A DNA stretch of 63,479 bases, the filler included, from Olpidium bornovanus S191 (taxonomy: Eukaryota > Fungi > Olpidiomycota), in assembly GCA_017911155.1 (NCBI GenBank). It is 32 parts of 32 records of this genome, joined end to end, with 100 filler letters (N's around TTAATTAATTAA, not from the genome) between each part and the next. Parts side by side here need not be neighbours in the genome. Positions count along the whole stretch, not along the records: positions 28,690 to 31,377 come from JAEFCI010006009.1; 31 more parts are not named here. One strand, given 5' to 3'. Position 1 is the stretch's first letter. Each line of letters starts with the position of its first letter. A program made the position numbers and the translations under genes. This document shows, piece by piece, positions 28,691-31,286 of the stretch. The notes under the pieces are model-generated. The model was not told the origin of the DNA. It saw only the letters and a program-made list of their open reading frames with translations, and did no database searches.

Positions 28691-31286
28691 ATGATTAAGA
28701 AGATACGGCGCTTCGGCATTTCGGCGCTGCTGTTCTCAGCGGTGTCGTCATTATACTTCGTGAGCCGGAAGGGCTTGCCGCCGCCGTCGGCCTCCCCGGA
28801 GTCCCGGTTTGATTTCCGCTACTACGACGACGATGGAGGCGGAGCCAACCCGGCCGGCGAGCGGAGTCGGAATCAGGCGGCTCTGCTGTCGGCGGCGAGT
28901 GATAGTCGGGAACCGGGGCTACGCAAGCTGAGCGAACAGGAAGAACTGATCAACGCGTTGGAACGGGATATCCGGGGCCAAAAGGATTCCCTCAAAGAAT
29001 ACGCGCAGCTGGTGCGAAGCCTGCAGGACGAGATCGCCAAGCGGGGTGCCGATCGGGCGGGGAAAACGAGCAGCAGCCCGCCGCTCGCCGCCACCGGCGC
29101 CGGCAATGGGACCGCGGACGGGCCGCTGGCTTCTAAGGGCGAACGTGTCGGCCCCGGTGCGGGCAAGCGACCGGACGCATCGACTCGGCCATCCGAGAAT
29201 AAACACGACAGTGAGTCACAACCACGGCCATCATTGATCAACGGCCAGGAGCGGCGGTCAATTTGGTCGGCGTTCGGCCCAATCCGCATTATACAAAGCT
29301 CCCTCTAAATTTGCACCTTTTGCAGGATTGGACGCGTTGCTTGCAGCCAATTACATGGGATGTTACCCTGATTCCTTCAATAACCGCGATCTGCCTGAAT
29401 TCTTCCCTGCGTTCACGACAAGCCCTGCAAAATGCATTGCGACCTGCCGTTCCCACGGGCACAACTTCGCCGGCCTGCAGGACGGAGGGGAATGCTGGTG
29501 CGGAAGCGAACTTCCGCGCCGCACCAAACTGCCCGATTCACAATGTCAGAAGCGGTGCTCTGGAGATCCGCTTAAGTTCTGCGGGGGGACGTTAAAGAAT
29601 AGCGTTTACAAAGCCGGTTAGTACCGCATCTCTTCCCGATATAATTAGGTGGCGTGGAAGAGAGGGAACCTTAAGCCTTCTACCTCCGGCAAGGCGTATA
29701 ATGGGATGTTCAAACCTTTCCTGTCGTTCTACCATTTCGCCCGTCTAGACCTAGAGGAATTCGACGACGTAAACATTAACGTGCTCGATGCCCGTCCGTT
29801 CGACATCCAAACTGCCGGCTCATCCGTCATTTGTCAGGGCCACAACTTCGATACCAGGTATCGGTTGCTTTCCCGCGGTCTGAGTGATATTCTTCTCGAA
29901 CAGAGGTTGCCGGATAACACGCATCCATGAACCGCAACGACCACAACTTTCTTTCCGCGCACCAGAGTTTGCAAGTTCAGAAATTTGTACTATGACACAT
30001 CTGCGTCGCTAAAAGGCCACCGAATATTTATTTTTTACCGAGGGCCGGGAACGATTATCAAGAACATGGACAACATTAAGAACGTGAAATCGGGAGAGGC
30101 TGTGACCAATCTGCTCGAATTCACTTCCATATCGGGCGTGTACGCCATGGACCTAGTGGTCGTCGACGTACCGCCGCCGGGCGCGCCCGTTACGGAAGAT
30201 CAGCAGAAGTACATGGAGTACAAGGGCGTTCACGTGTTAAGGGGAGCATCCTTCCTGTTCGCGCGGTTCCTTCCGTTCAACATCATGCACCACATTCACG
30301 ACGACCTGATGAACCTCTTCATGACTATGGTCGAGTACACGGACCCGTTTTACGAGGTGGTTTCCACCGTGGCAGAACGTAACGGCAAAGATGGCAGTGG
30401 CACTGGTCCCGCCGCGCTTTTCAATCTCCAGTCGCGTCTGGTGATCGTGGACGCGCACGGCGCCGGGGGTTATGCTGTCATGACGCAATACCTGTCGGAC
30501 CTGCCCGTCACGCACATCACCGAGATCGTGAGCTCTTCGCAGGCTCTGGCTAAGCAGATCGCGCGGAGCAAGGACGAGCCCTTGCCGCCGGCGTCCGATG
30601 GTAACCTTGTCCGGTTCGAGTCGGCCGTGGTTGGTATAACCCGGCACTGCAACTGGTACCAGTACGGGTTTAGGATCCCGCAAGGTCCCATCGAAGGCAA
30701 AGAAGTGGACGGATTCAACGTCCGCCTTTTCACCAACCACATCCTGGCGCGCATCCCGCCGCTCCGCAGGCTGCCTGCTTCTGTCCCGCTCCGCTTGGAG
30801 GGCGGCGGATCTGAGGCGGCGCCGACTGCTCCCCCGCCGAAGCCCGAGGAAGGAGAATTGGTTTTGGACCCGATCCAGCGCTACATCGTCATCTTCTCGA
30901 GGACGCTCAATAGGAACATTCTCAATGAGCCCGAGTTGGCCAATGCATTGCGCGATCAGTTCCCGTTCCTTAAAGTTGTAATCATCCGCCTCGAGGAGAC
31001 GCCAATCCCGACCATCATCCGGGTCTTGGAGAGGCCCCGGGTAGCCGTTGGCATGCACGGCAGTATTCTCATCCTCGCCATGTTCATGCCGAAGTGCGTG
31101 TGTACTAGCTTGTTCCATGCAGATTGACGAAAACGTTTACGCGGAGATTGATTGTCCATTCCCGCTGCGCTAGAGACTCGCTGCTTGTGGAGTTGTTCCC
31201 ATACGCCGTCCCAGCGGAAAATTATACCCCGTACAAGACTATGGCGAATTTGAAAGGCATGGGCATCAAGTATGCCGCGTGGATGG
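28691..31286 (+). CDS. Type II membrane glycosyltransferase: TM anchor, coiled stem, WSC domain and GT61 (POMGNT2/GTDC2-like) catalytic domain; 3'-partial
   Basis: N-terminal hydrophobic segment; WSC YMGCY...CIATC...FAGLQDGGECWCG...C...CSGD....CGG; GT61 motifs [57 protein letters not shown]...[10 protein letters not shown].GM...Y.AW. Confidence 0.88.

Follow-up and report, generated by a model that had tools for sequence, protein, structure and literature searches.

Positions 28690-31377 of the window (the whole 63,479-nucleotide (nt) stretch of Olpidium bornovanus S191 DNA analyzed here, assembled from records of GCA_017911155.1) derive from JAEFCI010006009.1 and carry one plus-strand gene that is cut at its 3' end by the edge of this piece. 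Judged from its sequence, the product is a type-II membrane glycosyltransferase facing the lumen of the secretory pathway, with a short cytosolic tail, a signal-anchor, a flexible stem, one WSC domain and a GT61 catalytic domain of the GT-B type. By similarity, the catalytic domain is a member of the POMGNT2 branch within GT61 and not of the EOGT or plant GT61 branches. We estimate a probability of roughly 55% that this enzyme carries out the chemistry of POMGNT2, the transfer of N-acetylglucosamine (GlcNAc), with uridine diphosphate (UDP)-GlcNAc as donor, onto mannose, with a different acceptor-targeting module.

The assignment of the catalytic domain is based on database searches that were run with single exons or with the proteins of relatives (the joined translation served only for the count of codons and stops). 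Exon 4 matches Pfam PF04577 (Glyco_transf_61; E-value: 5.3e-11, 43.4 bits, cutoff 27). Against solved structures, the same exon matches POMGNT2 (7e9j) with an E-value of 3.3e-21 and 78.9 bits and EOGT with 0.033 and 16.4 bits, the EOGT match being limited to one 70-residue stretch, while exon 5 by itself also matches POMGNT2 (2.3e-9). The environmental protein P0014, which is complete at 779 amino acids (aa) and 86% identical to the gene over exon 5, gives the same picture: 7.2e-62 and 212.9 bits for POMGNT2 and 6e-6 and 28 bits for EOGT. No plant GT61 chain among the solved structures was matched at E ≤ 1 by either P0014 or exon 4. Exon 3 alone has no Pfam or PDB match; in P0014, the corresponding segment lines up with the opening residues of the N-lobe of bovine POMGNT2. 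The conserved Cys in SSVICQG of exon 3 has as its partner the Cys in VCKFRNLYY at the beginning of exon 4. A search of the ESM Atlas confirmed GT61 only. The preliminary description of this gene had likened it to POMGNT2 motif by motif and had favored that enzyme over EOGT and the plant GT61 proteins; HMMER alignments to solved POMGNT2 chains reproduce the four motif pairs that it quoted, among them that of NIMHHIHDD, with E-values for exons 4 and 5 that lie far outside chance, and the exon 4 scores agree with the preference.

All of the donor-site and catalytic residues that lie inside the piece are, by alignment, intact, namely the equivalents of Asn163, His166, Arg294, Arg298, Glu324 and His345. 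All 67 aligned family rows, that of the window among them, show Asn163, His166, Arg294 and Arg298 without variation, and 66 of the 67 keep Glu324. The roles of Asn163, His166, Arg294, Arg298 and Glu324 are taken from structural work on bovine POMGNT2 (PMC8360118) and EOGT (PMC13123520) and from a preprint on GT61 (bioRxiv 10.1101/2025.07.18.665579). The motifs NxxHxxxD, with the UDP-phosphate Asn and the catalytic His, and RxxxRxxxN make up the "N-R-R constellation" of GT61 (PMC13123520; bioRxiv 10.1101/2025.07.18.665579). The window also keeps Phe159, a contact of the TPT motif, and WYQYGFxxPQGP, which is a feature of the POMGNT2 family. In the bovine enzyme, Cys436 and Cys437 of a C-lobe insertion (residues 395-451) contact mannose and TPT, and Tyr447 of the same insertion binds the UDP alpha-phosphate. 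The corresponding region (CC...YQD) lies past the end of the piece; it is present in all six relatives belonging to the WSC-type clade described below, in which HxCCxxPxWLFRIYQD, the motif of the pocket for mannose and peptide, differs very little from its bovine counterpart.

The product of exon 1 begins with a short basic tail, followed by a 17-residue hydrophobic signal-anchor (FGISALLFSAVSSLYFV, residues 8-24, nt 28712-28762), which is the highest 17-residue Kyte-Doolittle window (mean 1.85). The stem that follows is Pro/Gly/Ser-rich and of low complexity, with a possible coiled coil at residues ~77-128; the coiled-coil Pfam matches in exon 1 are weak and below the cutoff (ATG16, 0.045; SlyX, 0.17). 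Exon 2 matches the WSC profile PF01822 over positions 1-82 of 82 (E-value: 1.1e-20, 74.1 bits, cutoff 27.8) and has the eight cysteines expected for this domain, which sits between the stem and the GT61 domain as had been described. Comparison of the window with P0014 gives 32% identity for the stem, 60% for the WSC domain and 64% for the catalytic domain; at the sequence level, then, the WSC and catalytic domains are about equally well conserved, unlike the stem. Its identity to the WSC domains of Sorochytrium and Fonticula is 40-45%. WSC domains are of the carbohydrate-binding kind, polysaccharides being their best-known ligands. When the WSC domain of P0014 was compared with solved structures, the best match was the WSC domain of Kremen-1 (4e-8), with chain 7pz2_A, which we take to be yeast Wsc1, at 1.5e-5. 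On these matches WSC is not a fungus-only module but also an animal domain.

The WSC and GT61 domains are encoded on one spliced mRNA. The piece (28690-31377; G+C content 56.7%) holds six exons between 28691 and 31377, of which five are complete and the sixth is represented by its first 17 nt; exons 1-5 joined give 720 codons without a stop, and all introns are of the GT..AG type. Spliced contigs of three public runs (X1, X3 and X9) belonging to three studies lack precisely the four predicted introns, although the joint of intron 3 is ambiguous by 5 nt and becomes 29857/29966 if placed at GT..AG. In run X1, one contig of 2497 nt (word depth 90) covers exons 1-5 and goes beyond the content of the piece by 65 nt on the upstream side and 271 nt on the downstream side, and depth in the intron bins is zero. 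The preliminary description had proposed a gene with introns at 28691-31286 and had raised separate WSC and GT61 transcripts as a point against its view; the introns are real, a single contig spans both domains, and all exons of the described gene were located, with the difference that the last of them ends at 31285 and not at 31286. Intron 5 was placed from the loose ends of the RNA contigs, since these leave the piece at 31285 and resume with AATTCCCACCTCGAGAAC..., which are the letters at 31361-31377. The loose-end consensus, NSHLENNVGY (the first 10 residues past exon 5), matches NSHQENNVGY of P0014. The start codon is putative, because the edge of the piece lies 1 nt upstream of it and the RNA continues 65 nt further.

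The POMGNT2-like family is, on sequence criteria, pan-opisthokont (Holozoa and Holomycota) rather than animal-specific, and the catalytic family is as old as the opisthokonts. A word search with exon 4 covered only proteins of 206-656 aa and gave 13 matches, and an exhaustive search of representatives was used in its place, yielding 346 proteins at E ≤ 1e-3. The named relatives include, from Holozoa, animal POMGNT2, Capsaspora "ago61", Salpingoeca rosetta and Pigoraptor; from Rozella and the chytrids, Rozella allomycis, Synchytrium, Nowakowskiella, Quaeritorhiza, Lobulomyces/Clydaea and Zopfochytrium; from the blastoclads, Sorochytrium and Paraphysoderma; and the nucleariid-related slime mould Fonticula alba. 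Several of the non-animal relatives are already automatically named POMGNT2 in public databases, among them KAL7750731.1 of Sorochytrium, as the preliminary description had thought possible for early-diverging fungi. Its picture of an animal enzyme joined to a fungal module does not fit either the spread of this family or the presence of WSC in animal Kremen-1. No annotated full-length copy of the window protein was found in the collections searched. Our literature searches found no relevant paper on POMGNT2 or GT61 in fungi or Holomycota or in combination with WSC, and no paper stating the pan-opisthokont spread of the POMGNT2 family.

In an IQ-TREE phylogeny (70 rows, 321 columns, LG+C20+F+G4), which is unrooted and contains family members only, without EOGT or plant GT61, the window and P0014 group at 100/98 inside a seven-row clade with support of 95/81. 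Besides the window and P0014, this WSC-type clade contains Fonticula alba, Sorochytrium, Paraphysoderma and another two environmental sequences. A second clade contains Holozoa (96/97) and a third contains chytrids and Rozella with others (86/85), so that the window falls outside the holozoan/animal POMGNT2 clade; the unrooted tree does not fix the order of the three. WSC accompanies every member of the seven-row clade and was detected in no family member outside it. For the window, P0014, Sorochytrium and Fonticula, it is part of the protein itself. The evidence from the clade comprises the proteins P0014, P0019 and P0029 and same-strand open reading frames (ORFs) directly upstream at L002:4109-4504 of Paraphysoderma (7.8e-30) and L005:3-521 (2.5e-25), while at L003 and L004 the WSC match is only weak (6e-4). 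Both domains of P0014 are encoded in a single uninterrupted ORF of 779 codons, and the Sorochytrium and Fonticula gene models are likewise single WSC-GT61 proteins. A comparison of intron positions with Sorochytrium and Paraphysoderma revealed no clearly shared ones and gave no evidence on orthology. A profile word search with three full-length WSC-GT61 proteins returned only WSC-driven matches, missed its own members and was uninformative.

Two elements by which bovine POMGNT2 recognizes its acceptor are missing from the WSC-type clade. In the bovine enzyme, the FnIII domain of the partner protomer holds the acceptor peptide and its deletion (T477-delta) abolishes activity; His125 contacts the TPT motif of that peptide, and the H125A mutant is inactive (PMC8360118). 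By sequence comparison, FnIII is absent in the six clade members that have a C-terminus on record, all of them other than the window: each conserves CC..WLFRIYQD (6/6) and ends 14-33 residues past it. The coding region of P0014 closes with a stop that has another 333 nt behind it, and in Sorochytrium a gene on the opposite strand lies 61 nt beyond the WSC-GT61 gene. A hidden Markov model of animal FnIII tails had no match in any clade locus, and the same model detects the tails of choanoflagellates, filastereans and some chytrid-type proteins. For the window gene, the RNA contigs reach 250-342 nt beyond exon 5, which is long enough for an end like that of P0014 (74 codons) and too short for an added FnIII domain; a scan of metagenome contigs for close relatives covering the 3' end gave no confirmed relative. 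In the His125 column, the window has Val and the WSC clade as a whole has Ile, Val, Ala or a gap, and never His, although the alignment is gappy here and the exact residue is less certain than the absence of the D-H-N motif. Of the 34 chytrid-type rows, 33 have His at this position, as do 23 of the 26 from Holozoa. The preliminary description had called the enzyme core-M3-type; its placement in a separate clade, the missing His125 and the FnIII-less relatives speak against that label and leave a core-M3 pathway unsupported, because both elements are required for acceptor recognition and activity in the bovine enzyme (PMC8360118). Four proteins (Rozella P0171, Synchytrium P0038, Quaeritorhiza P0110 and P0065) end soon after the catalytic domain, have neither FnIII nor WSC and keep His125, indicating that loss of FnIII is not confined to the WSC clade.

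The window protein resembles animal POMGNT2 (AGO61/GTDC2; PDB 7E9J, 6XFI) in its GT61 GT-B domain, its type-II topology and the full set of NxxHxxxD, Phe159, WYQYGFxxPQGP, RxxxRxxxN, Glu324 and the MHG histidine, with the C-lobe insertion residues Cys436, Cys437 and Tyr447 present in its nearest relatives. It differs in an overall identity of only ~25-29%, in its separate clade and in the WSC domain between stem and catalytic domain; its clade differs further in having no FnIII domain (members with a recorded C-terminus) and Ile, Val or Ala for His125. We know of no dystroglycan-type acceptor in such organisms. Counterparts are already public: Fonticula alba XP_009496707.1 (named "WSC domain-containing protein"), Sorochytrium KAL7750731.1 and environmental P0014 have the same domain order, belong to the same clade and are also without FnIII and His125, and the catalytic domain of the window is 35-37% identical to those of the Fonticula and Sorochytrium proteins. 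The WSC-GT61 architecture is thus on record in Fonticula and two blastoclads, though unremarked, and no paper studying or discussing these proteins was found in the literature search. The POMGNT2-like proteins of chytrids and Rozella have the GT61 branch and catalytic motifs in common with the window and come from non-animal opisthokonts, but they lack WSC, keep His125 in all rows but one, have an FnIII-like tail only in some cases and form a clade of their own. EOGT has the family GT61, the N-R-R triad, the catalytic His and probably the UDP-GlcNAc donor in common with the window protein, but is without the POMGNT2 motifs and insertion and acts on Ser/Thr of EGF domains.

In the favored reading, the enzyme would use UDP-GlcNAc and add GlcNAc to the 4-hydroxyl of mannose on O-mannosylated secretory or wall proteins. 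This chemistry is proposed because the insertion peculiar to POMGNT2, in which Cys436 contacts mannose and Tyr447 binds phosphate, shows hardly any change in the clade relatives. The choice of acceptor would be unlike that of the animal enzyme, as the peptide-reading FnIII and His125 are missing in the clade, and the WSC domain would probably take over the role of bringing the enzyme to glycosylated substrates by way of carbohydrate binding. There are precedents in the WSC domains of the animal sialate O-sulfotransferases WSCD1/2 (PMC9304399) and in the lectin-like domain within the POMGnT1 stem (Kuwabara 2016, cited in PMC8478517). As far as these accounts go, WSCD1, WSCD2 and POMGnT1 are also luminal glycan-modifying enzymes with a WSC or lectin-like module N-terminal to the catalytic domain; their catalytic domains (sulfotransferase and GT13) are unrelated to GT61, and the likeness is an analogy of design. 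A GlcNAc-extended O-mannose pathway in the source organism is plausible as an inference.

Several points weigh against this reading. The chemistry is deduced from conserved residues across a very long span of evolution; His166 and the N-R-R triad occur throughout GT61 and are diagnostic of neither GlcNAc nor mannose, and the region of the mannose-contacting Cys436 lies outside the piece and was seen in relatives only, just as the absence of FnIII in the window gene rests on relatives. An enzyme without FnIII and His125, both of which are essential in the bovine protein (PMC8360118), may act on quite another acceptor, and a polysaccharide-binding WSC domain would suit a wall-polymer acceptor as well as a glycoprotein. 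In addition, given a tree without an outgroup, the WSC clade could be orthologous or paralogous to animal POMGNT2.

The main rival is an enzyme with the same fold and inverting mechanism whose acceptor, modified during secretion, is a wall or extracellular polysaccharide, or a glycolipid, comparable to the action of plant GT61 enzymes on xylan, with the WSC domain holding the polymer. GT61 does include polysaccharide-modifying enzymes, the clade is without both peptide-reading elements, FnIII and His125 (PMC8360118), and its WSC domain, of a carbohydrate-binding type, equals the catalytic domain in conservation. Nevertheless, the pocket motif HxCCxxPxWLFRIYQD is nearly identical to the bovine one in the clade relatives, the TPT contact Phe159 is kept in the window and plant-type GT61 chains went undetected by sequence, and we regard a polymer or glycolipid acceptor as unlikely, if still the strongest competitor. 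A changed donor is the lesser rival: the acceptor would be mannose but the donor UDP-glucose (UDP-Glc), UDP-xylose (UDP-Xyl), UDP-galactose (UDP-Gal) or UDP-N-acetylgalactosamine (UDP-GalNAc), and the product would not be GlcNAc-beta-1,4-Man. One altered residue moves the donor preference between that of SbXAT and that of SbXXT, both plant GT61 enzymes (bioRxiv 10.1101/2025.07.18.665579), and bovine Ala347/Gln348, which lie beside the UDP pocket, are Ser/Ile in the window. Ser followed by a hydrophobic residue is, however, the commonest state at 347/348 among the holozoan members, so it is no marker of the donor, and the two characterized animal GT61 enzymes both use UDP-GlcNAc; a different donor therefore seems distinctly improbable.

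Two further alternatives have very little in their favor. An EOGT-type or plant-type enzyme would share PF04577 and the N-R-R/His motifs, which are common to all GT61, yet the gap between the POMGNT2 and EOGT scores (62 bits for exon 4 and 185 bits for P0014), the lack of a match to any plant chain and the family features WYQYGFxxPQGP and the CC..YQD insertion make it extremely improbable, and the sequence scores contradict it. There is a similarly slight chance that WSC and GT61 belong to two adjacent genes or to an assembly chimera. The Paraphysoderma annotation does model the two parts separately, but the 2497-nt contig spans exons 1-5 in frame with identical joints in three runs from three studies, P0014, Sorochytrium and Fonticula each have a single protein and the intron phases keep one stop-free frame. 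Separate genes are effectively excluded by the spliced contigs and the one-ORF P0014.

Some further observations concern the gene, its transcripts and its family. The RNA/DNA labels of the runs are guesses only; runs X9-X11 were guessed to be "DNA?" but hold the spliced, intron-less form of the gene and are probably RNA or complementary DNA (cDNA) libraries, barring a processed copy of the gene at the DNA level. In the raw RNA-seq run X21, which carries the same species label, there were 0 reads at ~6% sampling, which is too thin for a test. Words of the sequence also turn up in metagenomes from soil and roots. The window differs from all three RNA/cDNA runs at two positions, 29110 G>T, which is synonymous, and 31035 C>A, which changes Pro to Thr (also Thr in the closest relative, P0014); because both differences recur in all three, the window carries a different allele or strain. 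Two minus-strand ORFs, 30237-31118 (293 aa, inside exon 4) and 28873-29289 (138 aa, exon 1), gave no match in Pfam and most probably arose by chance within coding sequence rich in G+C. An Rfam search of the piece gave no match on either strand. In Paraphysoderma sedebokerense (GCA_025602915.1), what is apparently a single stem-WSC-GT61 gene at L002:3581-6492 is annotated as three models. Other family members have odd architectures, namely P0048 (Trypsin_2 and GT61, 870 aa), P0183 of Nephila (OTU and GT61, 1089 aa) and P0120 of Lobulomyces/Clydaea (1250 aa with a 376-residue tail), and these are possibly merged gene models. Two POMGNT2-like proteins from gregarine transcriptomes in eukprot, P0018 and P0070 (Selenidium and a second GHVP assembly), have their place within the clade of chytrid and Rozella type and could be contamination, a culture parasite or a real non-opisthokont occurrence. 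Coordinates of the features are listed below.

Features of the WSC-GT61 gene (positions in the window) and gene models of its Paraphysoderma relative (positions in L002)
Feature	Position	Strand	Description or evidence
Exon 1	28691..29210	+	ORF and splice donor; putative start codon at the edge of the piece, signal-anchor, stem
Intron 1	29211..29325	+	115 nt, GT..AG, phase 1; removed exactly in X1, X3 and X9 contigs; frame kept
Exon 2	29326..29616	+	Single complete WSC domain with 8 cysteines
Intron 2	29617..29748	+	132 nt, GT..AG, phase 1; removed in X1, X3 and X9 contigs
Exon 3	29749..29857	+	Linker and beginning of GT61 N-lobe (translation)
Intron 3	29858..29965	+	108 nt, GT..AG, phase 2; removed in X1, X3 and X9 contigs
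Exon 4	29966..31093	+	GT61 catalytic domain: N-lobe and first half of C-lobe
NxxHxxxD (NIMHHIHD)	30279-30302	+	Asn163 and His166 equivalents
12-residue motif of exon 4	30654-30689	+	POMGNT2 alignment
RxxxRxxxN (RTLNRNILN)	30900-30926	+	Arg294 and Arg298 equivalents
Glu324 equivalent	30993-30995	+	Column conservation
MHG histidine	31056-31058	+	Column conservation
Intron 4	31094..31173	+	80 nt, GT..AG, phase 2; removed in X1, X3 and X9 contigs
Exon 5	31174..31285	+	Further C-lobe; PDB POMGNT2 match (2.3e-9)
Intron 5 (inferred)	31286..31360	+	75 nt, GT..AG, phase 0; loose ends of RNA contigs
Exon 6, first 17 nt (NSHLE...)	31361..31377	+	Cut by the end of the piece; translation and loose-end consensus
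Paraphysoderma L002 models	3581-4108; 4286-4507 (WSC); 5001-6492 (GT61)	same strand	GT61 model starts inside the N-lobe

The literature treats POMGNT2 as the gatekeeper of the dystroglycan core-M3 glycan, and an evolutionary survey traced its history only back to choanoflagellates (PMC8478517). The results presented here spread the family over both halves of the opisthokonts and single out one holomycotan clade with another accessory set, in which WSC is present and FnIII and His125 are not. They also point to a problem of annotation, as WSC-type proteins carry the automatic name "POMGNT2" or are divided among several gene models, and their distinct architecture is overlooked. Should the chemistry be conserved, early-diverging fungi and nucleariids would make a GlcNAc-Man O-glycan that yeasts do not, and the WSC-type enzyme would be a natural experiment in which the acceptor-selection module was changed and the catalytic pocket kept. 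More tentatively, and with the odds somewhat against it, an ancient POMGNT2-type lineage of Holomycota (Fonticula, the blastoclads and the organism of the window) may have exchanged FnIII and His125 for WSC and may add beta-1,4-GlcNAc to O-mannose, or to a wall polymer that contains mannose, guided by a lectin and not by a peptide. Were this so, GlcNAc-extended O-mannose would predate animals and dystroglycan, would date to the opisthokont ancestor and would have been lost in Dikarya.

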